DNA of 64,000 nucleotides, taken from assembly GCA_028826165.1 (NCBI GenBank), contig JAPDFW010000092.1:558001-622000 (forward strand), in the 5' to 3' direction. The position numbers were made by a program, and so were the translations under genes. Positions within the stretch are counted from its first letter, which is position 1; every line of letters begins with the position of its first letter. The notes below the pieces were generated by a model. That model was not told the DNA's origin and searched no databases. It saw only the letters and a program-made list of their open reading frames with translations. This document shows positions 16,726 through 46,529 of this stretch, one piece after another. Source of the DNA: Anaeramoeba ignava BMAN (lineage: Eukaryota > Protista > Anaeramoebae).

Positions 16726-16771
16726 TTTTAATTTATCTATTAATAAATAATTTAAATTTAATTATTATTAA

Positions 16772-17553: not shown

Positions 17554-20500
17554 ATGGATCCATCAATTTGTCCAAAATGTTTCCAAAATTATTCACAAGA
17601 AAGAAAGCCAATGATTATTTGTCAAGAAGGACATTCAATCTGTGGAGATTGTGTGAAAAAAATTGATAGTTGCCCTTTTTGCAGAAATTCTTTTAATGAT
17701 TTTAAACCAATTTTAAATCGCAATTTATTACAAGTTGTAAAGACATTCAAGTTACAATCAAAAGAACAAAAAGTTCCATTTATTCCATTGTCAGAATTAG
17801 AAGTTGAACCAAAACCATTTACTATAGGAGGAAGTGCTCAAATTTATAAAGGAAAATTTAAAGGAAAAGATGTTGTTGTCAAGAGAATGATGGTTATGAA
17901 TGATGAAAAATCAAATCAACAATTTGAAAACGAACTTAAATTAGCAATGAAATTTGAACATCCTTCAATTATTAAAATGTATGGAAAAACAGAAATGGAT
18001 AAAATGGTTGCACTTGTGATTGAATTTGCGAATCAAGGAGATTTAAGTAGCAAAATTCCAAGTTTAACATTTGAAGAACAAGTTGATTATTCTTTGCAAA
18101 TTATTGAAGGGATAAGAGTTTTACATTCAAATTCAATTATTCATCGTGATTTGAAACCTCCAAACATTTTGATAATCGATAATCATCCTAAAATTGCTGA
18201 TTTTGGAATTTCAAAAGTGAAAGAACATACTCTGAGAGTTACTTCAGTCATCATTTCATTTGATTATTCAGCTCCCGAACTTTTCCAAAAAGAGAATATT
18301 TATGATACTTCTTGTGATATTTTTAGTTTATCAATGATTTTATATTCAATTTTCTCAAAGAAAGAACCTTTCGGAAATTTGCATCCTGTTATGATTCCTG
18401 TGAAAGTAACACAAGGTGAAAGACCCGAATTTCCAAATGATTTCCCAAAAGAGTTAGCTAAAGTGATTGATAAAGGATGGAGTACAAATCCAAAAGAAAG
18501 ATCTTCATTGAACGAATTCACTCAATGTTTAGAAAGAATAAAACCTCAAAGTAATTCTTTTTTTCAATGAGATGTATTCAACTAACAAAGCAAAATCTAT
18601 TTTCTTTTAATCATATTTAATTTTCATAAACAATTAATGAAATTCTCAAAATAACAGAATCGATTCTACCAATTTCCCCCAACAATTTTCCTCCTTCAAA
18701 ACCTTCTAATAATAGAGCTAATATATCTCCACCTGTAATTTACAATACATCTTCAAATTTTTCAAAATCAAAATCAAAATCAAAATCAAAATCAAAATCA
18801 AAATCAAAATCAAAATCAAAATTCAAATTCAAAATCAATTAAATTCAAAATCAATTAAATTCAAAATAGACTGTTAAATTTGTGAAGAAAACTTTTGGAA
18901 TTGCTCAACATGATTTTCAAGCATCAAATCCAACAGAATTATCGTTTGCATTTGGAGATGAAGTTGAAATTTTAGCACAACATCAAGATGGATGGGGAGA
19001 TGCAAAATTGAACGGAAAAGCAGGACTTGTACCTCTAAGTTACTTAGATATAGTTGAAAAAACAGTAAAAATGACACCACCATCGACACCTAAATCACGA
19101 ATCCCACGAAAACAAATCGATAAATCAAATCAATTCCCAAAACCAAAATCACCAATATCTAATTTAAGAAAAAGAGAAACAAGCCAAAATCAAAATCAAA
19201 ATCAAATTCAAAATCAAATTCAAAATCAAATTCAAAATCAAATTCAAAATCAAAATCAAAATCAAAATCAAAATCAAAATCAAAATCGAAATCGAAATCA
19301 AAATCAAAATAAAAATCAATTTCCTAAATCAAATCAATTCCCAAAACCAAAATCACCAATATCTAATTTAATAAAAAGAGAAACAAGCCAAAATCAAAAT
19401 CAAAATCAAAATCAAAATCAAAATCAAAAATCAAATCAAATTCAAATTCAAATTCAAAATCAAAATAAAAATAAAAATCAAAATCAAAATCAAAATAATA
19501 ATAAAAATCAAAATAAAAATAAAAATCAATTTCCTAAATCAAATCAATTCCCAAAACCAAAATCACCAATATCTAATTTAATAAAAAGAGAAACAAGCCA
19601 AAATCAAAATCAAAATCAAAACCAAAATCAAAATCAAAATCAAATTCAAATTCAAAATCAAAATCAAAATCAAATTCAAAATCAAAATAAAATTGAAATT
19701 CAATCAACAGAAAAAACAATAAATTTTTTACAAGAACTTTCAAATAAAATTCAACAACATGATAAAAGTAAATCAAAAAAAAAAAAGGAAATTAAATTAA
19801 ATTAAATTGAATTAAATTAAATTAAATAATTTTAATTAATTTATTTAATTAATATTTGATTTATAAAAAAAATAATTTAATTTTACAAAAAAACAAATCA
19901 AAAAGGAAAAACAAAAGAATTAATTGAAATTGATGAATATTTTATTCTTAAATGTATGAATAATTTTCCAACAAATGAAATTATTCAAGAAAATTCATGT
20001 TTTGCTTTAAGAAAATTTACTGAAACAAACAAAAGTAAAATTCAAAAATTAATTTATTTCCAAAACAAAAAGAAAAAAGAAATATTAAATTCAAAATTCA
20101 AAATTCAAAATTCAAAATTCAAAAAAATAGAAAAATCAATTCAATTTGAAAATTTAAATGGAATTTATTTAATTTTGAAAGCAATGAAAAATTTCCCAAA
20201 TAATCAAGAAATTCAATTTCAATCTTTTTCAATTTTTATTAATATTGGAAAAGAAAAAGGTAAATCAATTTATTTTTCCAAAATTTTTTCATTAACAAAA
20301 AAGGAAAATAATCAATTTATTAATAAAATTAATCAATAAAATCAAATTCAAAATTAAAATTAAAATCAAAATCAAAATCAAAATCAAAATCAAAATCAAA
20401 ATCAAAATCAAAATCAAAATCAAAATCAAAATTCAAATTCAAAATCAAAATTAAAATTTAAAATCAAATTCAAAATCAAAATCAAAATCAAAATCAAAAT

Positions 20501-21176
20501 CAAAATCAAAATCAAAATCAAAATCAAAATCAAAATCAAAATCAAAATCAAAATCAAAATCAAATTCAAAATCAAAATCAAAATCAAAATCAAATTCAAA
20601 ATCAAAATCAAAATCAAAATCAAAATCAAAATCAAAATCAAAATCAAAATCAAAATCAAAATCAAATTCAAAATCAAATTCAAAATCAAAATCAAATTCA
20701 AAATCAAATTCAAAATCAAATTCAAATTTAAAATCAAATTCAAAATAGAAAATCAAAACAAAATTAAAGAATTATCTGGAATTGAAATAATTATTTCATC
20801 AATAATTAAATTTGAAAATGATAAAAATTTAAAAAAACAAGGATTTAAAGCTTTATCAAATTTAGGATTGAAAAATAAAGGTAAAAATTATAAAAAAATA
20901 AATTCCAAATTTTTTCTTTCAAAAATAAATTAAATTTTTCAATTCATTCTTCTTTTTCCAAAAAAAACAAAAAACAAAAACAACATTTATTTATTTAGAA
21001 ATTCAAAATCAAATCAAAACAAAGAAAGGTAAAACAAAACATTTTCCTTTTTTATTTCTTTTAACAATTTTTAACAAAACAAATTCATTCATTTTTTCAT
21101 TTATATTTTATTCCATTCTTTTTTTTACTATTATTAATAATTGGATATTTAAATTCCACAAAACAAAACAAAAACA

Positions 21177-21207
<31 letters not shown>

Positions 21208-23395
21208 CAAAACAAAACAAAACAAAACAAAACAAAACAAAAACAATTCAAAATTTCCATTCTTTTTCTTCTTTTTAAAATTTGATAAAAAAAATCCAAA
21301 AAATTTGGATGAAAAAGAATATTCATTCAAAGAATTGAAAATAGAAGATTTTAGAAAAATTGAAAAAGATGTAAATTATTTTGATTTTTGTTAAAATTAT
21401 TTAAAAGAAAAAAAATCAATTATCTAATCTAATATAATATAATATAATATAATCTAATCTAATCTAATCTAATCTAATCTAATCTAATCTAATCTAATCT
21501 AATCTAATCTAATCTAATCTAATATAATCATAAAAAATTTTTTGATTTTATTCTTTTATTTATTTTTTATTGGAAAATTTAAATAGGTTCCTGAAGATTC
21601 TGATTATGTATTATTTATTTAACAAAAAAACAAAAAACTCAAGATTTTTTTAAAAGAGAAAAAACAAAACGAATTTATTCAATTTATTTTAATTTTTGGA
21701 AATAATTTAAATCAATAATTTAATTTTTTTAATTTCTTTTTAACAATCCAAAATTTTTTAATCATCAAATATTTTATATATTTATATATTTATTTGGAAA
21801 AGATAAATCTATTTCCAAATTTTAAATTTATCAAAATGAAAAAATCAAAAATGAAAAATTAATTTCTTTTATATCCAAAATTAAAATTGAATTGAATTGA
21901 ATTAAATTGAATTGAATTATTAAGAGAAAAAAGGGAAAAAATAATGAATTAGTTTTATTATGAATATTTCATTATTTTTATTTGAATTTCTTTTAAGTAA
22001 ATTTTTTTTAAATTAAATTATTTTTTATTATTTCCAAAATAGAAAAATATTGAGAAATTATTATTTAAATCCAAATTTTATTTTATTATTATTTTTATTA
22101 TTATTGAATAAATTTAATCTCATTCTCCTTTTATTTTGTTTTATTTATTGAAATAATTAATTAATTTTTTTTTGATTAAAGAAATTATTTTTAGATTTCT
22201 TCTCAATTTAAATTCCACTTTTTTTCTTTTTTTCTTTTTGATTTTCCATTTTTTTTTCCTTTTCAAAATAATAAAATTTAAATTGAATTAAAAATATTTA
22301 TTTCCAAAAGAAAAAAAAAAAAAGAAAAAGAAATAATAAATTAAATCATTCTCCTTTTATTTTATTTTTTGATTGGAAATTGTTTTTTTATTTTGAAAAA
22401 TATCCTTTTAGATTCATTTGAAGATTATTCTTCTTGGAGGAGATAATATTGGAAAAAGTTGTGTTTTTAATAGGTTTATTTATAATACTTTTGTGAATAC
22501 TATACCAACATTAGGAGTTGATTTCAAGGAAATATTTTTGGAAGTGAATGGAAAAATAATTAAACTTCAAATTTGGGATATAGCTGGTCAAGGTTTGTTT
22601 ATAATTTCTTTTTAAATCAAAATCAAAATTAAAATTAAAATTTATTCCCAAAAATAATAACCAAATCAAAAACAAAAGGAAAATTTAAATCAATTATGAA
22701 ATATTTCTTTCCTTTTTTTTTAATTGAAAAAAAATAAGAATTATTTAAATTTATTTTCTAAAATTTAATTATTTAATTTATTATTTAATTAACAAAATAT
22801 TTCTTTATTTTTTTATTTTGGAATTAATTTCCCAATTTCTTTCCTAATTTATTTTTTTTATTTCATTTTTAGCACGTTTCCGTTCAATTTCAAAAATTTT
22901 TGTAGAATTTTTATTTTAAATTTATTTTCAAATTTTTAGAATATTAATTATCTCAAAATTAAATATAAAAAAAATTTCCAAAAAAATTCCAAAAAATTAA
23001 TTATTTTTTTTTCTTTTTTATTTAAACAAAATTAAAATTGATTTAAATCAAAAAAAACAATTTCCAAAAAATTAGCTTATTATCGAAATACAGATGGAGC
23101 TATGATAGTTTATGATATTACTAACAAAGATTCTTTTGATAATGATGTTAATTATTATATTAAAGATTTGGAAGAAAATGGTTATGAAAATATTCCAAAA
23201 ATATTAATTGGAAATAAATGTGATTTGGAAAAAGAAAGAGAAGTTTCAAAAGAAGAAGCTCAAAAATTTGCTGATGAAATTGGAATTCCATTTATTGAAA
23301 TTTCTGCAAAAAAAAATATTAATATTGATGAAGCTTTTTTTCTTTTAATAAAAATGATATTACAAAATCCAAAATCTAAAAATAAAATTAAATAA
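17554..23395 (+). CDS. Multi-exon RING - TKL-type kinase - SH3 - NQ-rich - 3xARM - Rab-like GTPase fusion protein
   Basis: Proposed exons: 17554-18550, 18658-18734, 18870-19767, 19906-20034, 20131-20259, 20749-20880, 20999-21028, ~21318-21370, 21587-21607, 22412-22592, ~22873-22901, 23076-23395. All GT-AG and in phase, except the switch-II mini-exon, which is off by one base. [23 protein letters not shown]; kinase [14 protein letters not shown]; SH3 [19 protein letters not shown]; Rab GKS, WDIAGQ, NKCD, EISAK. Confidence 0.7.
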
Positions 23396-23828
23396 TAAAT
23401 TGGGAAAGATTCAATTTAAGAAATAATTTGAATAATTATTAATTCAAAAAAAAAACAAAAATAATTATTTTATTCCATTTTTTTTTTGGATTAAATAATT
23501 AAAGAAAATTAAATTAAAATTTGATTTTAATTTTTTTGTTTTTTTAAATTTAGAAAATAAGAATGAAAATTTCCAAATTTGAATAAAAATAATATTTTCA
23601 ATTAATAAAATAAATTCAAAATCAAATTAATTTATTATTTAATTTATTATTTAAAAAATATTTTTATTCCACTTTTTTTTTTTGAATTAAAAATTTAATA
23701 AAAATAAAATTGATTATTTAAATAATAAAATAAATTTATTTTTCTTATTTATTGATTTAAAGAATTTAATTTGATTAAAAATAAATGAAAATAAAATTAA
23801 ATTTTGAAAAAAGAAAAGAAAATAATTT

Positions 23829-25223
23829 TTAAATGAAATAAGTTTCAAGTTCATCAACAATCCATAAATCATAAGAACCAGCTAAATAACTTTTAGATTC
23901 ATTTGTTCTTTCTTTAATTCCATTAGGTAGATTATAAGTAGTTCCAAAATCTGACCAACCAGGTTGTAAATTAGATTCCAAATAAAAATCTGGACCTCCT
24001 ATTCCAGATAAACCTCCTCCAAAATATGGACCAAATTTGGAAAAATTAGATACAACAGAAACTCTTTTTTTTCCTTTTTTAATTAGGAATTTCTCTGGTT
24101 TTCTATCTCCTTTAGCATTTCTTAATGAGAAAATAAATGCGTTTGGATCTTCAACTCCATATAAATTTTTATTAAATCCAATTTGAGTAAATCCTCCAAA
24201 AATAAAATTATCTTTTGTTTTGATAATAACTAATGTTTTTCCTTTATTATCAACTGCTTCATGCCATTTTTTAGAAGAAAATCCATTTATTTTTGCTGAA
24301 TATCCTAATTTCATTTTGGAAAAGAATTCATTATCATTTATCCATTCTTTTAATTTATTGAAATATTCTTTTTCTTTAATAATTTTTGATTTAAATCTTG
24401 ATTTGAAAATTAATGATTTTTCTTTTTCTTTTTCAATAAATTGATTTAATTCTTTTTCATTTTTAATATTTTGGAATTGAATTAATTTTTGTGAAATTTG
24501 ATTTGGAATTAATTTTTGTTTCAAAGTATCTTCAATTTCTTGTTTTGAAAAATCAATAAATCTGATTTTATCAATAATATTTGGAATTTGATTAATATTT
24601 GATTTATGTTTTCCCCATTTTATTATTGATTGGAATAGTTCAAATTCATTTATTAAAATAAAATCATTTAATAAAATTGAATTTAAATGATTTTCTTCAA
24701 GTTCAAGAAAAAATGAAGTTTTAATAAATTTATCAAAATTTTCAGAAATAAATTTATAAGAAGAATCTAATAATTGATTTAAGTTCATTCTTTCAGATAA
24801 TTTAAGAATATCAACAATAGTTTCAAATTGTAAATTATTTTTGATAAAATTTAAAGAAATTTCAATTAATTCATCAATTAAATATTTTGATGAAAAAATT
24901 AAAATTTCAATAACATTTTCTAAATTAATTTCAATTTTTCCTGAATAAAAATAATTCAAAATTGAAGATAGAATTGAACTTGAAACATCTTTTAAAATTA
25001 ATTTATTTTCTTGATATTCTTTCATTTTAGAATTAAAAAGAGATTTAAAATATTCACTTCTTGAAGAAAGAATTGATTTATGAGTTTTAAATGAAGTTTT
25101 ATTTTGTTCACAAATTATTTCAAAATCAAAATAACTTTCATATTGATTTTGATTTTGATTTTGATTTTGAAATAAATTTTTTAAATCATTTGAAAGTTTT
25201 TCTAAATTTAAATAAGTTTCCAT
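23829..25223 (-). CDS. BTB/POZ-(BACK)-TLDc domain protein
   Basis: BTB: DFEI..FKTHKSILSSRSEYFKSLFNSKMKE. TLDc: GFS..WHEAVDNKGKTLVIIKT..IFGGFT..AFIFSL..GPYFG..ELETY. Confidence 0.9.
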   Translation of the reverse strand: METYLNLEKLSNDLKNLFQNQNQNQNQYESYFDFEIICEQNKTSFKTHKSILSSRSEYFKSLFNSKMKEYQENKLILKDVSSSILSSILNYFYSGKIEINLENVIEILIFSSKYLIDELIEISLNFIKNNLQFETIVDILKLSERMNLNQLLDSSYKFISENFDKFIKTSFFLELEENHLNSILLNDFILINEFELFQSIIKWGKHKSNINQIPNIIDKIRFIDFSKQEIEDTLKQKLIPNQISQKLIQFQNIKNEKELNQFIEKEKEKSLIFKSRFKSKIIKEKEYFNKLKEWINDNEFFSKMKLGYSAKINGFSSKKWHEAVDNKGKTLVIIKTKDNFIFGGFTQIGFNKNLYGVEDPNAFIFSLRNAKGDRKPEKFLIKKGKKRVSVVSNFSKFGPYFGGGLSGIGGPDFYLESNLQPGWSDFGTTYNLPNGIKERTNESKSYLAGSYDLWIVDELETYFI

Positions 25224-25429
25224 TTTAAATAAAAAATTTAAAAATAAAAAAAATGAAAAAAAATAAAAAATGAAAATTATTTTAATTTAATATTTAATTT
25301 GGAATTAATTCTATTTTATATATTTTATTAATATTTCTTTATTCAAAATAATATAAAATAATTCTCAATAATTCAATAAAATTGATAAAATATTTTAAAT
25401 AAAAATATAAATTGAATTTTAATCTTTTT

Positions 25430-27530
25430 TAATAATATAGTTTAATTAATTTGTTATTAAATATAATTTATAAATAATTCTTTAATTTATTTTAAATTAA
25501 TATAAATCTAGAAATTAATATAAATTTGTTTAAAAATTTTAATATTTTTAATTAAAATCTATAATTATATTAATTAATAATATTTAATTATTTTATTATT
25601 AAATATAATTTATAAATAACTCCTTAATTTATTTTAAATTAATATAAATCTAAAAATTAATATAAATTTATTTAAAAATTTTAATATTTTTTTAATTAAA
25701 ATTTATAATTATATTAATTAATATAATTTAATTATTTTGTTATTAAATATAATTTATAATTAATTCTTTAATTTATTTTAAATTAATATAAATCTAGAAA
25801 TTAATATAAATTTATTTAAAAATTTTAATAATTTTTAATTAAAATTTGTAATTACATTAATTAATATAATTTAATTAATTTGTTATTAAATATAATTTAT
25901 AAATAATTCTTTAATTTATTTTAAATTAATATAAATATAGAAATTAATATAAATTTGTTTAAAAATTTTAATATTTTTTTAATTAAAATCTATAATTATA
26001 TTAATTAATATAATTTAATTAATTTGTTATTAAATATAATTTAAAATTAATTCTTTAATTTATTTTAAATTAATATAAATCTAGAAATTAATATAAATTT
26101 ATTTGAAAAATTTTAATATTTTTTTAATTAAAATTTATAATTATATTAAATAATATATTTTAATTAATTTGTTATTAAATATAATTTATAATTAATTCTT
26201 TAATTTATTTTAAATTAATATAAATCTAGAAATTAATATAAATTTATTTGAAAATTTTAATATTTTTTTAATTAAAATTTATAATTATATTAATTAATAT
26301 AATTTAATTAATTTGTTATTAAATATAATTTATAAATAATTCTTTAATTTATTTTAAATTAATATAAATTTAAAAATTAATATAAATTTGTTTCAAAATT
26401 TTTAATATTTTTTTAATTAAAATTTGTAATTATATTAATTAATATAATTTAATTAATTTGTTATTAAATATAATTTATAATTAATTCTTTAATTTATTTT
26501 AAATTAATATAAATTTAAAAATTAATATAAATTTGTTTAAAAATTTTAATATTTTTAATTAAAATTTATAATTACATTAATTTCTAAATTTTAATTAATT
26601 TGTTATTAAATATAATTTATAATTAATTCCTTAATTTATTTTAAATTAATATAAATCTAGAAATTAAAATAAATTTGTTTTAAAAATTTTAATATTTTTT
26701 TAATTAAAATCTATAATTACATTAATTAATAATATTTAATTAATTTGTTATTAAATATAATTTATAAATAATTCCTTAATTTATTTTAAATTAATATAAA
26801 TCAAATTAAAATAAAAATTTTGAAAATTTTAATATTTTTTTAATTAAAATTTGTAATTACATTAATTAATATAATTTAATTATTTTGTTATTAAATATAA
26901 TTTAAAATTAATTCCTTAATTTATTTTAAATTAATATAAATCTAAAAATTAAAATAAATTTGTTTAAAAATTTTAATATTTTTAATTAAAATTTATAATT
27001 ACATTAATTAATAATATTTAATTATTTTGTTATTAAATATAATTTATAAATAACTCCTTAATTTATTTTAAATTAATATAAATTTAGAAATTAATATAAA
27101 TTTATTTAAAAATTTTAATATTTTTTTAATTAAAATTTATAATTATATTAATTAATATAATTTAATTAATTTGTTATTAAATATAATTTATAATTAATTC
27201 TTTTAATTTATTTTAAATTAATATAAATTTAGAAATTAATATAAATTTGTTTCAAAATTTTTAATATTTTTTTAATTAAAATTTATAATTACATTAATTT
27301 CTAAATTTTAATTAATTTGTTATTAAATATAATTTAAAATTAATTCTTTAATTTATTTTAAATTAATATAAATTTAAAATTAATATAAATTTATTTAAAA
27401 ATTTTAATATTTTTTTAATTAAAATTTATAATTACATTAATTAACAAAATTTAAATAATTTGTTATTAAATATAATTTATAAATAATTCTTTAATTTATT
27501 TTAAATTAATATAAATCAAATTAAAATAAA
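25430..27530. repeat. AT-rich satellite A, ~144-bp unit, ~14-15 copies, directly upstream of Nup210
   Basis: ctagaaattaatataaattt-type anchor recurs at 25508, 25650, 25794, 26081, 26226 and onward; no unique spacers. Confidence 0.92.
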
Positions 27531-27577
27531 AAAATTTTTGAAAATTTTAGAAATCATTTTTTTTTTCCTCAAAATAA

Positions 27578-30500
27578 ATGACAGAAAAAAAAATAATCTT
27601 ATTGATTGTTGTTCTTTTTTTGATAGAAAATTTATATGAAACAAAAACAGAAACGGAAACAACACAAATAGGAATTTCAGAAATCAATTTACTTTTACCA
27701 TTTCATCCAAAAATTCCAATTTCTTACAAAATTCATGCACAAAATGGATGTTTCAAATGGTCAAGGTATAAAAAGAACCAAAACAACAAAAATAAAAAAG
27801 ATCCAAAAATATCGTTTATTCTCATCTCTTTCTTTTTTTTTTCTTTTATTACTTCAACTTCAAATTGTCTTAGTTCAAGACCTTCAGTTGTTAATGTTGA
27901 AACTTTATTTGAAAATTCTTTAGATTGCTCACAAAGTGCCATTATCACAGCAACTTCTAAATCATCAGACCGCACATCCGCTATGATATATGCAGAGGAG
28001 AAAGGTAGCTCATTATTTTTTTCTTGCTTTTAATGATTTGAAAATTTAATCAAAAAGAAATGGAAACAAAATTTTTATTTTGATTTTTAATTGATTTTTA
28101 ATTGATTTTTTCTTGATTTTTTTTTCTTAGTTTCTGGACAAGTTTTGAGATGTGAAGTTTTCGTTGATAAAATTACAAAGATTGAGATCTTAACTCGTTC
28201 AAGAACAATTTATGTGGATTCTTCTATTGAACTATTAGAAGTTCAAGGATATGATTCTGAAGGTAAAAAATTTTAATTTAAAAAAAAAAAAGAAGAAAAA
28301 AAAAATTTTTAAAAAGAAATTAAAAATTTAAAAAAAAATAAAAAGGGAATGTTTTTTCAAGTTTAAGTGGAATTTCATTTGATTGGGAAATTAATTCTAA
28401 AGGAAAGAATATCCTTTCTAAAATTAGTGTTGAAAAAGCTTTTTTAATGAAACCATTTGTTAAAGAATATGAAGAAACAAAAGTAAAAGAAAGAAATTAA
28501 AAAAATTGAAAAAAACAAAAAGAAAAAAATAAACAAAAAATTTTTACTTTTTTGGATGTCAATGATAAAAGGAATGGTTAGAAGACAAGGGGTCTGAAAA
28601 TACAAATATATTACTTGTTCAGGGAATCAGTACAGGAAAAGCAGATGTGACAGCCTCAATCAAAGATGATATTTATCGGGATATTGAGAAGTCAACAGTA
28701 ACAATATCTGTGATGGAACCAATTCAAATACAACCTTTTCAGAACGTTTATCTTATTCCAAAGCAGCAATTCCAATACAATTTAATTCTATCAAAACGCG
28801 AGAAGCAAGAATTAATTAAGATGCCAAATACCAATTATAAATGGAGAACAACAAATCCTGAGATTGCAACAATTGATCAAAGGGGAATGCTAACAGCAAA
28901 AAGTTATGGATCAACAGAAATTCTAGTTACAGATCAGAATATTGCTGAAAATGAAGCAAGAGCAACAGTCTATGTTGTTAAGCCAGAAAAAATAAAGCTG
29001 GCAATACATGATGTTCCTCAAGAAATGTCTACTAATTCTTTGGAAGAAAAGATGAAATATCTCTCTATTCCAAATTTTCAATCAAGTTATTGGGAAAATA
29101 GTTACTGGGCTTTATTTATTAATAACGAGCATATTTTAGAGATTGAATTGATTGATAAAGATTTGCATAAAATATGGATCAATAAAGTATTTATTACAAT
29201 TATTAAAATTCATTTTAAAATTTAAAATTCATTTTAAAATTAAAATTCATTTTAAAATTTAAAATTCATTTTGAAATTAAAATTGAAATTAAAATTCATT
29301 TTAAAATTAAAATTAAAATTAAAATTAAAATTAAAATTAAAATTAAAATTCATTTTAAAATTCAAATTAAAATTAAAAAATTAAAATTAAAATTAAAATT
29401 CATTTTAAAATTCATTTTGAAAATTCATTTTGAAAATCCATTTTGAAAATTCATTTTAAAATTAAAATTAAAATTATAATTAGAACACTGGAAGTTTTAG
29501 TATAAAATTTAGCGATCCAAAAATACTCACAATTGTGGAGGAATCAAAAAAACACGAAACAGTTAATTTTAAAACAAAAAATTACGGAGAAACAACTGCA
29601 ACAGCAATATTTAAATCGGGTGATATTAATTTGTCTACAGAAGAAAAAATCACAGTAACAAAACAAATATCAGTCAATCCATCACCTGTTTTAAGACTTG
29701 CCTTTTGGGAAAATCTTGCTATTCCTCACACTTATAAACTTGATGTCAGCGGAGGAAGTGGATCTTTTGTGTTTAAAACAGATATGAGTCAAATTGCAAG
29801 TGTAAATGCAATAGGAATGGTTTCTGGAATAAAACCAGGAGAAAGCAAATTGAAAGTTTCAGATCAAAAAAACCCTAAAAATTATGAAATTATTACCGTA
29901 AATTTATTTAGATTATATTTTTTGGCAATTTTTTTAAACAAATATTCATTTCTTTCCTTTTGTTTTCTTTTTATTATTAATAGGTTGTTGTTGAAAAACC
30001 ATCAAGTATCCAAATTGTTGCTCCTTTTAATGAAATTGAAGTTGGAAAACTTCTTGAGCTTGAAATTCAGGCTTATGACTCAAAACACAATAAATTCCAT
30101 AATTCATCACTTCTTCCTATTCAATGGAAAATGAGCAATATGGAAAATTTTGAATTAAAAAAGCATAAGCAAATGGAACAAATCTTGACAAAACAAGGAG
30201 TATTAGCACATCATGAAGGATTTTCAACAATCACAGCATCATTACTCGGGAATGGATTTGAGGAGCAGATTAATGCACATATTCAAATTGCAGGATTTTT
30301 TCCGCTTGAAGTGAAACATTTTCCAAACAAATATTGCGAAAGTAAAAATCTTGCATTGACAACATTAGGATGCTCGGCAACAGTTCTTATTACAGGAGGA
30401 CCTTTGCCATGGGGAGACTCACCAGAATTTATCCAGGAAATTTTACCGCAAATACCTGATAGTGTGATGGTGTCTAATTCCGAGCGTGTGGGCGTTACTC

Positions 30501-33500: not shown

Positions 33501-34282
33501 CAAATCCTGAGCTTTCAAGACAAACCAATCTCAAACTACTTATCACCGTTTCGGATTCTGATCAATCATATGCTCTCAAACATTTTCATACAATAAACCT
33601 CAATTTGGGGATCATGCTTTTCTACAATCCCAACGATCTGCATTTCTCAAAAAATCATCGATCCGCAACAGTCATTGTTTATTCAGATGCGGATCATCTT
33701 GATTTCTCATCTGAAGATCCATCCCAAATCCGAATATACAAAGTGCGATTCGATGAGAAAGAATACGAGGGTGTTTTATTAGCGAACGAAGGCGGCGAAT
33801 CTATATTTCCGCAAGTTTTCCACATACAACTAACTGATGAACCAAAATTCTTCACTCAATCCAAAGTGATTTTTAAAGACACAAAAACAAATCAAGTTGA
33901 AATTTTGACATTTTCATTTTTATCCGATTCAAATTACATTCCAAACAATTATGATCAACCAAGACAACTGCCGCCATCACAAGCAGAACGACAACAATCC
34001 AAATCTCTGTTCGTTCTTGTTTCTTCGCTTCTTTTGGCTGTTATTGTTGTTGGTGTTTATCTTTTCCGTTCTTATCAACAAAATTTGGAAATTGAACGTA
34101 TAAGAAGATTTCGTCAATTTTCCCCAATTTCTCCAAGAAGAAGTCCCCCTAATTTGTTGCGTAATAAACATATCCCTCCTATTCAAACAGGTCAAAATTA
34201 TCAATCTGCAAGAAATAAAATTGTTCCTGCTCAAATTACTTCTGGTATTGTTCGTCGTCATTCAAAAACTGGAAATTTTTAA
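27578..34282 (+). CDS. NUP210: Nuclear pore membrane glycoprotein gp210/Nup210, multi-exon
   Basis: Signal peptide; NLLLP..GCFKW; GQVLRCEVFVDKI..IEILT; EVQGYDSEGNVFSSL.G; repeated Ig-like units (S.DP.IA.VD..G.V.G); single TM helix (LFVLVSSLLLAVIVVGVYLF) and a short S/P tail. Confidence 0.9.
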
Positions 34283-34405: not shown

Positions 34406-34700
34406 TTTTTTATTTAAAATGTTTTATTAAATTTATTGAATTATTGAGAATTATTTTATATTATTTTGAATAAAGAAATATTAATAAAATATATAAAATA
34501 GAATTGATTCTAAATTAAATATTAAATTAAAATAATTTTCATTTTTTAAATAAATTAATTAAAATATTTTATCAAATTTATTGAATTATTGAGAATTATT
34601 TTATATTATTTTTAATAAATAAATATTAATAAAATATATAAAATAGAATTGATTCCAAATTAAATATTAAATTAAAATAATTTTCATTTTTTATTTTTTT
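34406..34700 (+). repeat. Tandem repeat C, two ~145-bp copies upstream of BTB-TLDc
   Basis: gagaattattttatattatt at 34446 and 34591; a single inverted copy lies at ~25260-25405. Confidence 0.8.
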
Positions 34701-34735
34701 TCATTTTTTTCATTTTTAAATTTTTTATTTCAAAA

Positions 34736-36168
34736 ATGGAAACTTATTTAAATTTAGAAAAACTTTCAAATGATTTAAAAAATTTATTTCAAAATCAAAA
34801 TCAAAATGAAAATCAATATGAAAGTTATTTTGATTTTGAAATAATTTGTGAACAAAATAAAACTTCATTTAAAACTCATAAATCAATTCTTTCTTCAAGA
34901 AGTGAATATTTTAAATCTCTTTTTAATTCTAAAATGAAAGAATATCAAGAAAATAAATTAATTTTAAAAGATGTTTCAAATTCAATTCTATTTTCAATTT
35001 TGAATTATTTTTATTCAGGAAAAATTGAAATTAATTTAGAAAATGTTATTGAAATTTTAATTTTTTCATCAAAATATTTAATTGATGAATTAATTGAAAT
35101 TTGTTCAAATTTTATCAAAAATAATTTACAAATTGAAACTATTGTTGATATTCTTAAATTATCTGAAAGAATGAACTTAAATCAATTATTAGATTCTTCT
35201 TATAAATTTATTTTTGAAAATTTACATAAATTTATTAAAACTTCATTTTTTCTTGAACTTGAAGAAAATCATTTAAATTCAATTTTATTAAATGATTTTA
35301 TTTTAATAAATGAATTTGAACTATTTCAATCAATAATAAAATGGGGAAAAATAAATCAAATATTAATCAAATTCCAAATATTATTGATAAAATAAGATTT
35401 ATTGATTTTTCAAAACAAGAAATTGAAGATATTTTGAAACAAAAATTAATTCCAAATCAAATTTCACAAAAATTAATTCAATTCCAAAATATTAAAAATG
35501 AAAAAGAATTAAATCAATTTATTGAAAAAGAAAAAGAAAAATCATTAATTTTCAAATCAAGAAAAAGATTTAAATCAAAAATTATTAAAGAAATTGAAGA
35601 TTTCAATAAATTAAAAGAATGGATAAATGATAATGAATTCTTTTCCAAAATGAAATTAGGATATTCAGCAAAAATAAATGGATTTTCTTCTACAAAAATG
35701 GCATGAAAAATGTGATAATAAAGGAAAAACATTAGTTATTATCAAAACAAAAGATAATTTTATTTTTGGAGGATTTACTCAAATTGGATTTACAACTGAA
35801 AAATCAAAATGGAATGAAGAAGATCGAGAAGATGATTATGGATTTATTATTGATTCAAATGCATTTATTTTCTCATTAAGAAATGCTAAGAATGATAGAA
35901 AACCAGAAAATTCCTAATTAAAAAAGATCATAAAGAAAATGCAATTTATTATGATTTAAAAAGAGGTCCGTGTTTTGGAGGTGATTTATATGGAATAGGA
36001 ATTCCAGATTTTTATTTGAATTCTAAATTACAAGCTGAAGGTTCAAATTTAGGATATAGTTATAATCTTCCTAATGGGATTATTTATAAAACAAATGAAG
36101 CTAAAAGTTATTTAGCTGGTTCTAAGAATAAATGGATTGTTGATGAATTTGAAACTTATTTCATTTAA
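34736..36168 (+). pseudogene. BTB-TLDc paralogue with ~3 frameshifts (pseudogene or assembly indels)
   Basis: N-terminus almost identical to 25223(-). Frame breaks near 35350, 35697 and 35910, all at A-runs. Ends DEFETYFI* at 36168. Confidence 0.75.
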
Positions 36169-36252
36169 AACAATTTAAAAAATAAAAAATATTTTTTTAT
36201 TTCACTTTTTTATTTTTCATTTTTTTTCTTTTCTTTTTTTTTAAAAAACAAA

Positions 36253-38043
36253 ATGAATAATAATCAAAATCAAAATCAAAATCAAAATCAAAATGAAATT
36301 GAAATGAAAAATTTACAAAAAAAAGTAACAAAAAATTTAATTAAAGATTATTCAAACCTTTTAAATGGAAATTCATTTCATGATTTTTCAATTTTTGTTG
36401 AGAATGAATCAAATCCTTTTGAATTTAAAGTTCATAAATCAATTTTATTTTCAAGATCTCCTTTTTTTAATAAGTTTTTAAAGGAACAAAATGATATTGA
36501 TAAGATTTTTTTAAACCAATTTAATAAAAAAGAAATGGAATCAATTTTGAAATATATTTATTATGGAAATATTTCTTTTGAGAATCAAGAAAATCTTTTT
36601 GAATTATTAGAAATTTCAATTTATTTTAAATTAAATTTATTGAAAGAATTTATTCAAAAAAAAATTTCAAATTCAGTTAATTATTCAAATTTTTTCCAAT
36701 TTTTTTTCCAAAATCGAGACTTGAAATCAAATGAAATTGAAATAAAATGTTTTGAATTAATAAATCAAAATTTTTCCCAAATTCAAAATAATGAAAATTT
36801 ATTCAATTTAACTGAAAAAGAAATTATCAAATTTATTCAATTTAAACAAGAAAAAAAAGAAATTTTTCAATTTGATTTTTTTCAATTTTTAAATAATTGG
36901 ATTAAAAAAAGAAATGAAAAATTAAAATTAAGAGGAAAGAAAGAAATTGAAATTGAAATTGAAAAGAAAAGATTATTTCATTCTTTTTTTTCATTATTTG
37001 ATAAAGATTCAATTCCAAAACAAGATTTTGATAAATTAAAAGAATTTGATTTTCTTCCAAAATCTTTTTTAATTAATCTTGAAAGAAATATTTTTGAAAT
37101 TCAAGCAAAAGAAAAAGAAACAAAAATAAAAGAAAAAGAAAAGAAAATTCAAAGAAGAGATAAAAGAATCAAATCATTTGAAATAGAAAATCAGAAAAAA
37201 GTGAAAGAGAGCGAAGATTTGAAATCACAAAATCAGAAGAAAGATCAGAAAATCCATTCTAAAAGTAAAGAGATTATCAATTTAAAATCAGAAAATGAAA
37301 AGAAAGAAAAAGAAATTATCAAATTGAAATCAGAAAATAAGAAAAAAGATAAGATTCTCAAAAAAAAAGATGAGGAAATCCAAAATCTTAGATCATCATT
37401 TCAAAAAGAAATTGAAAAAGAGAAACAAAAACAGAAAGATAATGCATTGTTGAATTTTTTTTCAGTTTCAGAAATTGTGAAAGATATTGAATATGTTCTG
37501 AAATTACAAGAATGGATAAATGATAATGAATTCTTTTCCAAAATGAAAAAAGGATATTCAGCAAAAATAGATGGATTTTCTGCTCAAAATTGGCATTCAG
37601 CAGTTGATAATAAAGGAAAAACATTAGTTATTATCAAAACAAAAGATAATTTTATTTTTGGAGGATTTACTCAAATTGGATGGACAATGGATCAATCAAA
37701 ATGGAGTTATAAATTGCAAAATCCAGATAGAGGATGGATTATTGATCCAAATGCATTTATTTTTTCATTAAGAAATGATAAAGGAAATAGAAAACCAGAA
37801 AAATTTCCAATTAAACAAGGTGAAGAGCATCATGCCTTTTGGTATAATTATAATGAAGGTCCAGATTTTGGAAATGGTGCTGATATTGAGTTAAACTCTT
37901 ATTTACAACCTGGTCGGTCAAATTTTGGTTATAGTTATCATCTTCCTAATGGAATTAAATATGAGACAAAAAAATCTAAAAGTTATTTAGCTGGTTCTTA
38001 TAATGAATGGATTGTTGATGAACTTGAAACTTATTTCATTTAA
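36253..38043 (+). CDS. BTB - coiled-coil - TLDc domain protein
   Basis: BTB (HDFSI..FKVHKSILFSRSPFF), K/E-rich coil, C-terminal TLDc ending DELETYFI. Confidence 0.9.
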   Translation: MNNNQNQNQNQNQNEIEMKNLQKKVTKNLIKDYSNLLNGNSFHDFSIFVENESNPFEFKVHKSILFSRSPFFNKFLKEQNDIDKIFLNQFNKKEMESILKYIYYGNISFENQENLFELLEISIYFKLNLLKEFIQKKISNSVNYSNFFQFFFQNRDLKSNEIEIKCFELINQNFSQIQNNENLFNLTEKEIIKFIQFKQEKKEIFQFDFFQFLNNWIKKRNEKLKLRGKKEIEIEIEKKRLFHSFFSLFDKDSIPKQDFDKLKEFDFLPKSFLINLERNIFEIQAKEKETKIKEKEKKIQRRDKRIKSFEIENQKKVKESEDLKSQNQKKDQKIHSKSKEIINLKSENEKKEKEIIKLKSENKKKDKILKKKDEEIQNLRSSFQKEIEKEKQKQKDNALLNFFSVSEIVKDIEYVLKLQEWINDNEFFSKMKKGYSAKIDGFSAQNWHSAVDNKGKTLVIIKTKDNFIFGGFTQIGWTMDQSKWSYKLQNPDRGWIIDPNAFIFSLRNDKGNRKPEKFPIKQGEEHHAFWYNYNEGPDFGNGADIELNSYLQPGRSNFGYSYHLPNGIKYETKKSKSYLAGSYNEWIVDELETYFI

Positions 38044-38458
38044 AAATTTATTTTCTTTTCTTTTTTCAAAATTTAATTTCATTTTCATTTATTTTTAATC
38101 AAATTAAATTCTTTAAATCAATAAATAAGAAAAATAAATTTAATTTATTATTTAAATAATCAATTTTATTTTTATTAAATTTTTAATTCAAAAAAAAAAG
38201 TGGAATAAAAATATTTTTTAAATAATAAATTAAATAATAAATTAAATAATAAATTAATTTGATTTTGAATTTATTTTATTAATTGAAAATATTATTTTTA
38301 TTCAAATTTGGAAATTTTCATTCTTATTTTCTAAATTTAAAAAAACAAAAAAATTAAAATCAAATTTTAAATTTAATTTTCTTTAATTATTTAATCCAAA
38401 AAAAAAAGTGGAATAAAATAATTATTTTTGTTTTTTTTTGAATTAATAATTATTCAAA

Positions 38459-41400: not shown

Positions 41401-44400
41401 TGATTTTGATTTTGAATTTGAATTTGAATTTGAATTTGAATTTGATTTTGAATTTGATTTTGATTTTGATTTTGATTTTGATTTTGATTTTGAATTTGAA
41501 TTTGATTTTGATTTTGATTTTGATTTTGATTTTGAATTTGATTTTGATTTTGATTTTGAATTTTGATTTTGATTTTGATTTTGATTTAGATTTAGATTTT
41601 AATTTTAATTTTAATTTTGATTTTGATTTTGATTTTGATTTTGATTTTGAATTTGATTTTGAATTTAATTTTGATTTTAATTTTGATTTTGATTTTGTTG
41701 ATTAATTTTATTAATAAATTGATTATTTTTCTTTTTTTGTTAATGAAAAAATTTTGGAAAAATAAATTGATTTACCTTTTTCTTTTCCAATATTAATAAA
41801 AATTGAAAAAGATTGAAATTGAATTTGTTGATTATTTGGGAAATTTATCATTGCTTTCAAAATTAAATCAATTCCATTTAAATTTTCAAATTGAATTGAT
41901 TTTTCTATTTTTTTGAATTTTGGATTTTGAATTTAATATTTCTTTTTTCTTTTTGTTTTGGAAATAAATTAATTTTTGAATTTTACTTTTGTTTGTTTCA
42001 GTAAATTTTCTTAAAGCAAAACATGAATTTTCTTGAATAATTTCATTTGTTGGAAAATTATTCATACATTTAAGAATAAAATATTCATCAATTTCAATTA
42101 ATTCTTTTGTTTTTCCTTTTTGTTTTGTTTTTTGTGAAATTAAATTATTTTTTTTATAAATCAAATATTAATTAAATAAATTAATTAAAATTATTCAATT
42201 TAATTCAATTCAATTTAATTTAATTTAATTCAATTTAATTTCCTTTTTTTTTTTGATTTACTTTTATCATGTTGTTGAATTTTATTTGAAAGTTCTTGTA
42301 AAAAATTTGTTGTGTTTTCTGTTGATTGAATTTCTATTTTTGGTTTTTGATTTTTAATTTCATTTTGAATATTTTGAATATTTTTGATTTCTTGATCAAT
42401 TTTTGAATAAAATTCATTTTTTCTTTTTTCAATTTCATTATTAAATTCTTGAATTATTTTTTCATTTTCATTTAAATTTTCATTTTTAATTTCAATTTCT
42501 TGAATTTTCTTTTCAATTTTTCCCAAATATTCATTTTATTTAAATGGAATTATATTTTTTATTTCTTCAATTATTTTATCAATTTCAATTTTATTTTGAA
42601 TTTGATTTTGATTTTTATTTTTATTTTTATTTTTATTTTGAATTTGAATTTGAATTTTATTTTTATTTTTATTTTGATTTTTATTTTGATTTTTATTTTT
42701 ATTTTGATTTTGATTTTAATTTTTATTTTGATTTTGATTTTGAATTTTGATTTTGAATTTTGATTTTGATTTTGATTTTGAATTTGAATTTGAATTTGAT
42801 TTTGATTTTGATTTTGAATTTGATTTTGATTTTGATTTTGAATTTGAATTTGATTTTGATTTTGATTTTGATTTTAATTTTGAATTTGAAGTTGAATTTG
42901 ATTTTGATTTTGAATTTGATTTTGATTTTGAATTTGATTTTGATTTTGATTTTGATTTTGATTTTGATTTTGAATTTGATTTTGAATTTGATTTTGATTT
43001 TGAATTTGATTTTGATTTTGAATTTGATTTTGATTTTGATTTTGATTTTGATTTTGATTTTGAATTTGATTTTGAATTTGATTTTGATTTTGAATTTGAT
43101 TTTGATTTTGAATTTGATTTTGATTTTGAATTTGAATTTGAATTTGATTTTGATTTTGATTTTGATTTTGATTTTGATTTTGATTTTGATTTTGATTTTG
43201 ATTTTGAATTTGATTTTGAATTTGATTTTGAATTTGAATTTGATTTTGAATTTGTTGATTAATTTTATTAATAAATTGATTATTTTTCTTTTTTTGTTAA
43301 TGAAAAAATTTTGGAAAAATAAATTGATTTACCTTTTTCTTTTCCAATATTAATAAAAATTGAAAAAGATTGAAATTGGATTTGTTGATTATTTGGGAAA
43401 TTTTTCATTGCTTTCAAAATTAAATCAATTCCATTTAAATTTTCAAATTGAATTGATTTTTCTATTTTTTTGAATTTTGGATTTTGGATTTTGAATTTGA
43501 TATTTCTTTTTTGTTTTTGTTTTTCTTTTGAAAATAAATTAATTTTTGAATTTTACTTTTGTTTGTTTCAGTAAATTTTCTTAAAGCAAAACATGAATTT
43601 TCTTGAATAATTTCATTTGTTGGGAAATTATTCATACATTTAAGAATAAAATATTCATCAATTTCAATTAATTCTTTTGTTTTTCCTTTTTGTTTTGTTT
43701 TTTGTGAAATTAAATTATTTTTTTTATAAATCAAATATTAATTAAATAAATTAATTAAAATTATTCAATTTAATTCAATTCAATTTAATTTAATTTAATT
43801 CAATTTAATTTCCTTTTTTTTTTTGATTTACTTTTATCATTTTGTTGAATTTTATTTGAAAGTTCTTGTAAAAAATTTATTGTGTTTTCTGTTGATTGAA
43901 GAATTTCTATTTTTGGTTTTTGATTTTTAATTTCATTTTGAATATTTTGAATATTTTTGATTTCTTGATCAATTTTTGAATAAAATTCATTTTTTCTTTT
44001 TTCAATTTCATTATTAAATTTTTGAATTATTTTTTCATTTTCATTTAAATTTTCATTTTTAATTTCAATTTTTTGAATTTTCTTTTCAATTTTTCCCAAA
44101 TATTCATTTTGTTTGAATGGAATTATATTTTTTATTTCTTCAATTATTTTATCAATTTCAATTTTATTTTGAATTTGATTTTTATTTTTATTTTTATTTT
44201 TATTTTTATTTTGAATTTGAATTTGAATTTTATTTTTATTTTGATTTTGATTTTTATTTTTATTTTTATTTTTATTTTGATTTTGAATTTGATTTTTATT
44301 TTGATTTTTATTTTTATTTTTATTTTTATTTTGATTTTGAATTTGATTTTTATTTTGATTTTGATTTTGATTTTTATTTTGATTTTGATTTTGATTTTGA

Positions 44401-46529
44401 TTTTTATTTTGATTTTTATTTTTATTTTGGTTTTGATTTTGATTTTGATTTTGAATTTGATTTTGATTTTTATTTTGATTTTGAATTTGATTTTGATTTT
44501 GATTTTTATTTTGATTTTGATTTTGATTTTTATTTTGATTTTGAATTTGATTTTTATTTTGATTTTGATTTTGATTTTTATTTTTATTTTTATTTTGATT
44601 TTTATTTTTATTTTGATTTTGATTTTGATTTTGATTTTGATTTTTATTTTTATTTTTATTTTGATTTTGATTTTGATTTTGATTTTGATTTTGATTTTGA
44701 TTTTGATTTTGATTTTGATTTTTATTTTTATTTTGATTTTTATTTTGATTTTTATTTTGATTTTTATTTTGATTTTTATTTTTATTTTTATTTTTATTTT
44801 GATTTTGAATTTGATTTTGAATTTGATTTTTATTTTGATTTTGATTTTGATTTTTATTTTGATTTTGATTTTTATTTTGATTTTGATTTTGATTTTTATT
44901 TTTATTTTTATTTTTATTTTTATTTTGATTTTGATTTTGATTTTGATTTTTATTTTTATTTTTATTTTTATTTTGATTTTTATTTTGAATTTTATTTTGG
45001 TTTTGATTTTGATTTTGATTTTGATTTTGATTTTGATTTTGATTTTGATTTTGATTTTGATTTTGATTTTGATTTTGATTTTGATTTTGATTTTGATTTT
45101 TGATTTGTTGAATAAATTGTTTAAATTCTTCTAAATTTTCTTTTCTTTTTTTTTCAAATTGATTTTCAAATTCATTTTTAAATTTTTGAATTTTTTCTTC
45201 AAGTAATTTTAAATCTTCTTCTGTTTTTGATTTTGGAAAATTTATTAATTCTTGATATTGTTTATCAATTTCTTCCAAATTGTTATTTTTTATTTTTTTG
45301 AATTTATTTTGAATTTTTTGAATTTCTTTTTGAAAATTTTCTAAATCTTTTTTTCTATTTTGTTCAAATAAATATTTCAAATTAATAATTATTTTCTTAA
45401 CTTGTTCTAAATATTCTTTTTTCATTTTTTCATTTTCATTTTGAATTAATTGTTGAAATTTTTCTTCAATTTCTTTTTTCCATTTTTCATATTCTTTTTG
45501 AATTTCTTCAATTTGTTTTTTAATTTTTTCTAATTTTTCTTTTTCTTTTTGGGTTGTTTTTTGTTGATAATAAAGTTGATTAATTGTAAATTCTGATTTT
45601 TGATTTTCTTGTTCAAATTCTTCAATATTTGAATTTAATAAAATAATTTTATTTTGAAGTTGAGAAATTGATTTATTTTTGATTTGTTGAATTTGAATTT
45701 GAAATTGATTAATTGATTTTGTTTGTGAAATTTGATTTAATAAATTTGAAAAAGAATTTTCAATTTCATTGTTTTCATTTTCATTTTGATTTGTTTCAAA
45801 TTTATTTAATTTTATCAATTTTTTTTGATTATTTTGATTCAATTTTTGTTTAATTTGTTGAATAATTTGGAATTGATTTGAAAGATTTTGATTTAAAGAA
45901 ATTAATCCAATAAAATTGTAAATTTGATTTTGATTTTGATTTAAATATTTATCAAAATTTGGATTTGAAATGATAAATTGAATATTTTGGAAAATAAATT
46001 TTTCACAATTTTGAGAAAGATTTTTTGAATTAATTTTTTGAGATTTAAAATAAATTTCTAAAATATTTTCAATATTAAAAATTGATTGAATTTCAAGTTC
46101 AATTTTGAATTGAATTTCTTTTAATTTAATTTGATTTGCAAATTGAAAATATTTATCAAATTTTTGTTTATCAAATTCAAATTTTCCATTATAAAAAAAT
46201 TTAATAATTGGTTTAACAATTTCAGAACTAAAATTATTAAAATAAATTGAATTAAATTTATTTTCTCTTCTATTTATCATAAAATATTTTGAACGAGCTT
46301 CTAAAATTGATTTATGACAAGGAATTAAAATTTTATCTTTTCCACAATAAATTTGAAAATCTGAAGTTTTTTTATTTCCAAACATTAAACCAATTTGTTT
46401 ATTTGCTTGATTTATTAAGAATTTATTAAATTTTTTAATTTTGGATTGAATTTGTTGATTTGAATTTGAATTTGAATTTGAATTTGAATTTGAATTTGAA
46501 TTTGAATTTGAATTTGAATTTGAATTCAT
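38459..46529 (-). CDS. Multi-exon BTB - coiled-coil - NQ/NK - 5xARM - Rab-like GTPase fusion protein
   Basis: Proposed exons: 46529-43832, 43685-43557, 43461-43333, 42115-41987, 41904-41776, 41165-41034, 40918-40889, ~40625-40485, 40298-40278, 39459-39276, 39005-38982, 38811-38459; GT-AG and phase-compatible. [23 protein letters not shown]; Rab [37 protein letters not shown]. Confidence 0.72.
41700..44200. repeat. Internal ~1.57-kb direct tandem duplication (end of exon 1 plus two ARM exons)
   Basis: 41700-42600 matches 43257-44170; ORFs 41886-42164 and 43462-43734 are near-identical. Confidence 0.9.

Follow-up and report, generated by a model that had tools for sequence, protein, structure and literature searches.

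Paralogous armadillo-Rab genes behind different predicted heads in an inverted duplication of Anaeramoeba ignava

The stretch analysed here, called the window, is 64,000 nucleotides of contig JAPDFW010000092.1 of the Anaeramoeba ignava BMAN assembly (C82:558001-622000), and it carries two genes, a left one on the plus strand and a right one on the minus strand, whose 3' ends encode armadillo (ARM) repeats followed by a small GTPase domain of the Rab family. The explanation that we favour, with a confidence slightly better than even, is that the two are paralogous multi-exon members of a lineage-specific, exon-shuffled family. Their common 3' module would consist of three LRRK2-type ARM repeats, a helical linker, a micro-exon and an anchor-less Rab8/10-like domain spread over three exons, and would most likely be preceded, in phase, by a head. 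In the ancestral form this head would be a BTB domain with a coiled coil; in the left gene it would have been replaced by a 1.8-kb cassette (RING, TKL-type kinase, PxxP linker and SH3) whose source was a Rab-less RING-kinase-SH3-ARM gene, the recombination having taken place in two sequences common to both parents, an upstream satellite-like repeat and an N/Q-coding microsatellite. Positive selection would act on the Rab domain and linker, at the P-loop, at switches I and II and in the alpha3 region, with the ARM repeats and the G4/G5 half kept constant. Of the new results, we regard the mapped exchange of the cassette and positive selection on the anchor-less Rab domain as the most solid.

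The gene pair sits within an inverted segmental duplication whose arms span about 16.7-25.5 kb (left) and about 47.4-34.4 kb (right), with block identities of 91-96%, with an ARM-Rab gene and a convergent BTB-BACK-TLDc gene in each arm. A third copy of the BTB-coiled coil-ARM-Rab unit, with its BTB-TLDc neighbour, lies 14 kb upstream of the window (L009, C82:540000-549999); it has frameshifts in the head, ARM and Rab exons, is a pseudogene and serves below as a near-neutral comparator. The fourth copy, on contig C70 (L001), is intact. Genome searches covered the A. ignava assembly of 42.8 Mb in 147 contigs. The BMAN genome is 80.65% A+T overall and 91.86% A+T in introns (PMC11550330), and the window is extremely AT-rich, with GC contents of 9-15% between genes and 24-38% in long exons; its genes have GT-AG introns and the standard genetic code.

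The Rab exons and the armadillo module

The Rab exons of the two genes do not begin as a gene would. Rab exon 1 starts directly after an AG at 22412 (left, plus strand) and 39459 (right, minus strand), and in both copies there is an in-frame TAG just 5' of it and no Met inside it. When all GT donors over 1.1 kb ahead of Rab exon 1 were listed, no ATG-started exon closing in phase 0 was present in either copy, and the sole phase-0-to-phase-0 exon was a 21-nucleotide micro-exon bordered by AG and GT at 21587-21607 (left, encoding VPEDSDY) and 40298-40278 (right), which forms the N-terminal lead-in to Rab strand 1. In the C70 copy this micro-exon has 24 nucleotides, an in-frame difference of three. 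The intron before it holds a (TAATC)n microsatellite (21430-21530 and 40440-40350) that differs in length among all four copies. An earlier reading of the sequence alone (the sequence-only reading) had proposed that the Rab exons lack an ATG of their own and start at AG acceptors behind a conserved 21-nucleotide exon with a GT donor. The sequence and the listing of GT donors agree with it, and the join of the right micro-exon to Rab exon 1 is used in a public gene model, GenBank KAJ5070897.1. That reading had missed a small third Rab exon, which encodes switch II and has 24 nucleotides in the right, C70 and upstream copies and 29 in the left.

The public model was reached by searching the last Rab exon against 1.84 billion representative proteins, which returned, at 77% identity and with the match at its C-terminus, a protein of 363 residues named 'small gtp binding protein rab8 [Anaeramoeba ignava]' (KAJ5070897.1; P0007 hereafter). 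P0007 is the right copy. It maps exon by exon to 42065-38459, and every border agrees with the junctions that we had derived independently from the sequence. From an internal Met in ARM1, at the GenBank coding-sequence ATG at 42065, it proceeds on the minus strand through ARM1 (exon 42115-41987), ARM2 (41904-41776), ARM3 (41165-41034), a 30-nucleotide exon (40918-40889), a long helical linker exon of 140 nucleotides (40624-40485) and the micro-exon to the Rab part, which is made up of Rab exon 1 (39459-39276, P-loop to DTTGH), the 24-nucleotide switch-II exon (39005-38982) and the last exon (38811-38459, the rest of the domain and the stop). The left gene has the same ARM exons, with one repeat each and phase 1-1 (19906-20034, 20131-20259 and 20749-20880, plus strand), and homologues of the 30-nucleotide exon (20999-21028) and of the helical linker exon (21318-21370). 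Its Rab part comprises exon 1 (22412-22592; P-loop, switch I, strands 2-3 and DIAGQ; Pfam Ras 56 bits), a switch-II exon (22873-22901) and a last exon (23076-23395; YYR..., NKCD and SAK; Pfam Ras 92 bits). The ARM-Rab fusion is thus real as far as a public gene model can show. Since we did not find in PMC11550330 the gene-prediction method used for eukaryotic genes, P0007 counts as annotation and not as transcript proof.

On P0007 the Rab domain scores 168 bits with Pfam Ras, and its best solved relatives are Rab8A (E 5e-44) and Rab10. An AlphaFold 2 model of P0007 (mean predicted local confidence, pLDDT, 81; predicted template-modelling score, pTM, 0.69) has a confident Rab fold, a helix of about 40 residues before it (residues 112-153) and another, terminal one behind it; prediction is poor for the first two ARM repeats, which are truncated. 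P0007 stood alone among the 150 best representatives, so that no other organism with the ARM-Rab architecture appeared there. Other long Rab hits (NCA2-Rab, B3-Rab, tropomyosin-Rab and tandem Rabs) were set aside as unrelated fusions or merged models.

The genome contains hundreds of Rab genes (also PMC11550330), which would make it natural to see in these exons two ordinary small Rab genes, each with a start exon of its own that goes unrecognised. We consider this highly improbable and rejected a stand-alone Rab gene. Neither copy has an ATG-started phase-0 exon within the 1.1 kb upstream, and the public model splices the Rab exons to ARM exons. The C-terminal cysteine for geranylgeranylation is absent from the tails of the left, right, C70 and upstream copies. 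No protein of 64-205 residues in a set of 5.8 billion matched the Rab exon, so that the database searched has no record of a stand-alone Rab model. The proposal that the Rab exons are not genes in their own right is upheld by P0007, in which they form the 3' end of a larger ARM-repeat gene.

Heads, joins and a mapped exchange

In the analysis of the heads, exons were searched singly, frame checks were arithmetic on exon lengths, and the only full-length protein used was the database entry P0007. The first exon of the left gene (17554-18550, plus strand) encodes a RING and a kinase. The RING has eight zinc ligands in C3HC4 spacing (C6, C9, C23, H27, C30, C33, C40 and C43 of the reading frame from 17554) and scores 29.3 bits with Pfam Sina_RING, equal to the cut-off; these are the sequence features of a RING-type E3 ligase, and ligase activity is predicted. 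The kinase (Pkinase, 160 bits) has the catalytic Lys and the HRD, DFG and APE motifs, and its best solved relatives are TAK1, Roco4 (second-best), CTR1 and MLK, as expected of the TKL group. Exon 2 (18658-18734) encodes a proline-rich, PxxP-like linker in 77 nucleotides, phase 1 to 0, and exon 3 (18870-19767) encodes an SH3 domain (Pfam SH3_1, 42 bits), P/NQ-rich repeats and a coiled-coil tail that is common with the BTB genes. The head exon of the right gene (43832-46529, minus strand) encodes a BTB domain (Pfam BTB, 42 bits; cut-off 20.5), a helical region, a long coiled coil and N/Q/K-rich repeats, and is 43% identical to two annotated A. ignava BTB-coiled coil-ARM proteins, P0001 and P0002, the first of which matches the assembly of the window at 100%; the BTB appears to be of the cullin-3 adaptor type, with putative cullin-3 binding. 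The claim of two copies with different heads, RING-kinase-SH3 on the left and BTB-coiled coil on the right, was therefore correct. With Pfam ARM_LRRK2 the three ARM repeats of the window score 19-23.5 bits, under the cut-off of 26.2, and the eight homologous repeats of a paralogue, P0162, score 130 bits.

P0162 is a GenBank model of 847 residues on contig C110 with the order RING-kinase-SH3-ARMx8, in which each ARM repeat is one phase 1-1 exon. The junctions of the left head are identical to those of P0162, including the donor of exon 1 and a homologue of exon 2, and from the head to the micro-exon all borders of the left chain are GT-AG and the phases match. In the right gene there is an open path of 3840 nucleotides, a multiple of 3, from the BTB ATG (46529) to the Rab stop. 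This gene also contains an internal duplication of 1.57 kb, missed by the sequence-only reading, which comprises the coiled-coil tail, ARM1 and ARM2: a distal ARM1' (43685-43557) and ARM2' (43461-43333) stand behind the head, and in the duplicated coiled-coil tail (42262-42560, minus strand) a CAA of the head exon corresponds to an in-frame TAA (42538-42536). Since every ARM exon is phase 1-1, several skipping paths in the right gene remain open. The annotated paralogues P0001 and P0002, which have a BTB-coiled coil and three ARM repeats, and P0162 join their heads to ARM exons at the same sites, and in the C70 copy the entire exon chain is in phase, with neither the internal duplication nor a stop between head and Rab. 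From exon structure, fusion of the heads in phase to the ARM-Rab module is likely. Of the in-phase chain from head to Rab claimed earlier, the GT-AG borders and the phases from the head ATG onward stand; the last Rab exon of the left copy is out of frame.

Several observations count against continuity from head to Rab. RNA runs were searched with a 5.8-kb piece of the left gene and none was listed, and the continuity is for that reason something that we infer; P0007 has no near-identical EukProt transcriptome partner in its 90% cluster, a hint of low expression. For the right copy, the GenBank model begins at a Met within ARM1 and omits the BTB head, no annotated full-length head-ARM-Rab protein was found in searches covering 500-1590 and 331-1053 residues, the in-frame TAA of the duplicated segment closes some splice paths from the head, and in the left gene the Rab part is, as assembled, out of frame. 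The functional reading given below, in which a binding surface is coupled to ubiquitin or kinase output, is also one that we only infer.

The start of P0007 at 42065, the TAA, the missing long fusion protein and the many family members that are head-ARM proteins with no Rab (P0001, P0162) could equally be taken to mean two genes per arm: the head gene would end within or just after the first ARM exons, and a separate ARM-Rab gene of 363 residues would start from the ARM1 Met, the internal duplication with its TAA having split an older fusion on the right arm. We think this possible but somewhat unlikely. This Met falls midway through an armadillo repeat, and upstream of it the frame stays open with an in-phase AG acceptor, which is typical of a 5'-truncated prediction. 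The uniform 1-1 phase of the ARM exons and the open path from the BTB ATG to the Rab stop speak for one gene, as does the C70 copy, and the promoter-like repeat element that stands before the heads is absent in front of the proximal ARM1. Under the single-gene reading that we prefer, the public record has two annotation problems, namely that the ARM-Rab model named 'rab8' is 5'-truncated and that the heads are without an annotated full-length model that we could find.

The left gene is a recombinant. Over 17447-19225 it matches the C110 gene that encodes RING-kinase-SH3-ARMx8 and no Rab, at 92-93% identity, while 16728-17515 and the sequence from 19185 onward match the right copy; it follows from this pattern that a RING-kinase-PxxP-SH3 cassette replaced the BTB-coiled coil head of a BTB-coiled coil-ARM-Rab gene. 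The 3' breakpoint falls at about 19185-19225, in the N/Q-coding microsatellite after the SH3, and the 5' junction lies within an upstream element carried by both parents. The head swap is accordingly a recombination event with mapped breakpoints and a cassette of about 1.8 kb. The BTB-coiled coil-ARM-Rab form is the older one, present in the right copy, the intact C70 copy and the upstream pseudogene, and the RING-kinase form is a single recent chimera; the two are for this reason not a balanced pair of designs.

The upstream element had been described as a sequence of about 250 bp shared by the two heads. The common sequence is real and longer than was stated (16728-17515 against 47389-46599, 93% over 799 nucleotides), but it is not private to the two genes and has more than 200 matches in the genome. 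The element is AT-rich and about 320-400 bp long, and at these places it often forms tandem arrays directly upstream of BTB-coiled coil-ARM and RING-kinase genes (arrays on C42, C142, C79, C108, C71, C110 and others). In the window it occurs at 16500-17553, 46599-47470, 25237-25979 and 34459-34717. It may be a promoter-associated satellite and a substrate for recombination.

The RING-kinase head is found at about 40 places in the genome, and in the annotated A. ignava proteins that carry it (P0154-P0166) it is followed by ARM, ubiquitin-like, SH3-MyTH4-RhoGAP, RhoGEF-PH or ankyrin tails; a Ras domain occurs in none of these listed proteins. Several of them are misnamed 'palmitoyltransferase'. 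At two other loci (L010, C6:90500-95500, and L011, C61:382300-387300) Rab exons with a polybasic end lie no more than 2 kb behind a RING-kinase gene. The C61 Rab ends in a CaaX box (CALF) and the C6 tail reads CAFVLN; of the C6 copy only the last exon is annotated in GenBank, as a 'rab8' of 119 residues (P0050). Both loci, considered as candidates for further fusions, have possible Met-containing exons between kinase and Rab. A Rab on C77 was rejected as a further fusion, as it belongs to a separate Rab-BTB gene. Another A. ignava protein, P0003 (593 residues), is annotated as actin, but behind a complete actin it has a BTB-head segment that shares 54% identity with the right head, and two gene models have probably been merged in it.

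Divergence and state of the Rab domains

The Rab exons of the two genes have changed faster than the introns between them. Identity between left and right is 94-99% in introns, 86% in Rab exon 1, 89% in the last exon and 42% in the switch-II exon. Over the two large Rab exons the proportion of nonsynonymous differences (pN) was 0.135 and that of synonymous differences (pS) 0.042, against 0.030 in introns (Fisher p 4e-13), and change in the exons was 4-5 times as fast as in introns. Those changes that only one lineage has make up 5.6-6.0% of the left and right Rab exons and 1.1-1.2% of their introns, and among unique codon changes the ratio of synonymous to nonsynonymous was 1:20 in the left copy, 0:21 in the right and 0:13 in the pseudogene. 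The differences between left and right concentrate in the P-loop, helix 1 and switch I, and the G3 motif and switch II up to helix 3, whereas strands 2-3 and the G4-G5 half are identical. This pattern, which includes the intact and annotated right copy, points to diversifying selection on an interaction surface.

Two other causes of the excess were rejected. Gene conversion from other Rab genes would require a donor, and a search of the genome DNA with both Rab exon 1 sequences gave none beyond family members. A GC-to-AT mutation bias does not account for it either, as changes between A and T alone are still about four times higher in exons, at 0.041 in Rab exons and 0.011 in introns (p 2e-4); in ARM exons the value is 0.003.

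The nucleotide-binding motifs of a Rab, GxxxxGK[ST], NKCD and SAK, are present in all copies. The motifs of the C70 copy are canonical (GGSGPGKS, DTAGQ and ERFRT). In the right copy all Rab exons are intact, its G3 motif is DTTGH, with His for the catalytic Gln, and its switch II is non-canonical. The left copy has DIAGQ as G3 motif, and its 29-nucleotide switch-II exon arose by a complex indel and not by a single homopolymer slip; as assembled, it puts the last Rab exon out of frame, with a stop after nine codons. Skipping the switch-II exon would bring the frame back but remove switch II. The early stop of the left last exon also cuts off the C-terminal helix kept in the other copies. Since the switch-II exon shifts the frame and the C-terminal helix is gone, the left form is probably losing its Rab part.

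The state of the left copy, the substitutions in the right one and the clear pseudogene upstream, with frameshifts in head, ARM and Rab, would also suit Rab exons that are decaying relics, drifting under relaxed constraint after duplication in an AT-biased genome, the expressed products being head-ARM proteins only. By our own estimate GC-to-AT bias alone could speed up such freed exons about twofold over introns. The observed rate is however 4-5 times that of introns, and about four times for A-to-T and T-to-A changes, which bias does not explain, and the intact right copy has 21 nonsynonymous and no synonymous unique codon changes. Moreover, frames are still open in the right and C70 copies, with every splice site and the G1, G4 and G5 motifs preserved, and the changes cluster on the switch and P-loop surfaces with an invariant G4/G5 half. 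We therefore find general decay unlikely and keep positive selection on the Rab domain as the preferred account.

Known architectures, possible roles and the surrounding region

There are few multidomain small GTPases, among them ROCO, RhoBTB and the large Rabs, and most are of ancient origin. The ARM-Rab genes belong among multidomain small GTPases and are neither Roco, RhoBTB nor large Rab. ROCO proteins, such as LRRK2 and Dictyostelium Roco4, have a Roc GTPase with COR immediately behind it. The ARM-Rab family has parts of the same kinds, namely a TKL kinase, armadillo repeats that are probably of the LRRK2 type and a GTPase of the Ras superfamily. In contrast to ROCO proteins, it is without COR and LRR domains and its GTPase is a true Rab and not a Roc (Ras 168 bits against Roc 87 bits on P0007); in the left gene the kinase comes first and the GTPase last, with a RING finger and an SH3 in addition. 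COR gave no match in P0007 or in any exon, LRR was not found in them, and the protein ends about 20 residues past the G domain, so the earlier statement that this is not a Roco protein was right. LRRK2 binds and phosphorylates Rab8 and Rab10, and these two targets are the closest relatives of the ARM-Rab GTPase domain.

RhoBTB, with an N-terminal GTPase and two BTB domains after it, resembles the right gene, in which a small GTPase and a BTB putatively of the cullin-3 adaptor type would likewise be joined in one protein. The right gene differs in having the BTB first and the Rab last, a single BTB, a long coiled coil and ARM repeats between them, and no CaaX box. A Rab-based counterpart of RhoBTB does occur in the genome, in tandem arrays of Rab-BTB-BTB genes (L004, C59:152000-161999, and C81:343000-353000). 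The large Rab GTPases Rab44, Rab45/RASEF and Rab46/CRACR2A-L have a regulatory N-terminal domain, a coiled coil and a C-terminal Rab (PMC8303950), and the ARM-Rab genes would have the same arrangement, a coiled coil and a C-terminal Rab after an N-terminal regulatory domain in one chain. Unlike the large Rabs, however, they carry BTB or RING-kinase-SH3 in place of an EF-hand, have ARM repeats between coiled coil and Rab, lack a prenylation cysteine and form a recent, lineage-specific family. The Anaeramoeba genome paper reports a Rab expansion (PMC11550330), and the words BTB, armadillo and kinase are absent from its main text; in the literature we found no description of an ARM-Rab architecture headed by BTB or RING-kinase.

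As to function, the protein could act as a cytosolic scaffold in which the Rab domain offers a nucleotide-dependent or locked binding surface for Rab partners, and the head would couple the bound partner to cullin-3 in the BTB form or to RING and kinase activity in the left form. The sequence-only reading had spoken of one sensor module wired to two different ubiquitin outputs, which is speculation. Anaeramoeba has intracellular bacteria as companions and hundreds of Rab genes (PMC11550330), and a Rab surface tied to ubiquitin-ligase or kinase heads is for that reason a candidate for the control of engulfed material. We also put forward, as an outside possibility in which we place little confidence, that the anchor-less Rab8/10-like domain serves as an integrated bait or decoy. 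It would imitate a surface recognised by bacterial effectors or host Rab partners, would be engaged in an arms race at the P-loop and switch regions and, once bound or modified, would pass the partner or a signal on to the cullin-3 adaptor in the BTB form or to the RING-kinase in the left form. The working analogy is with the integrated-decoy immune receptors of plants, NLR-ID (PMC4759884): a copy of a host-target domain fused to a signalling scaffold, a fast-evolving surface, and an expanding, recombining family with pseudogenes. The ARM-Rab family differs from NLR-ID in having neither NB-ARC nor LRR, and the likeness is by analogy alone, with no pathogen or symbiont effector known. If the decoy idea were true, the family would serve the amoeba for surveillance or symbiont control, as a system assembled by exon shuffling and comparable to the plant receptors, and its TAK1/LRRK2-like kinase, LRRK2-like ARM repeats and Rab8/10-like switch II would make up a cis version of the animal kinase-Rab relationship.

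Whatever the function, this protist appears to have built new multidomain GTPases very recently, and the steps are legible in the DNA: one-repeat exons of the same phase, a head cassette swapped at common repeats, an internal duplication and a neighbouring pseudogene. Exons that outpace their own introns several-fold are a rare and strong sign of diversifying selection, here on surfaces used by Rab partners and bacterial effectors.

At the centre of the inverted duplication lies a gene for a NUP210-like nuclear pore glycoprotein (27578-34282, plus strand), with Ig_NUP210 domains and a C-terminal membrane span; its GC content is the highest in the window. The BTB-BACK-TLDc genes are tail to tail with the ARM-Rab genes, at 23829-25223 (minus strand) on the left arm and at 34736-35917 and 36253-38043 (both plus strand) on the right. 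The first of the two on the right, at 34736-35917, extends across three reading frames, probably as a pseudogene, and the right arm has an extra, longer paralogue with a coiled-coil insert. An Rfam search of the window gave no match. Outside the duplication, at 53779-57635 (plus strand), two tandem genes encode RCC1 repeats and a BTB pair, the first split over several frames or introns, and both end in the same type of BTB pair as the Rab-BTB-BTB arrays.

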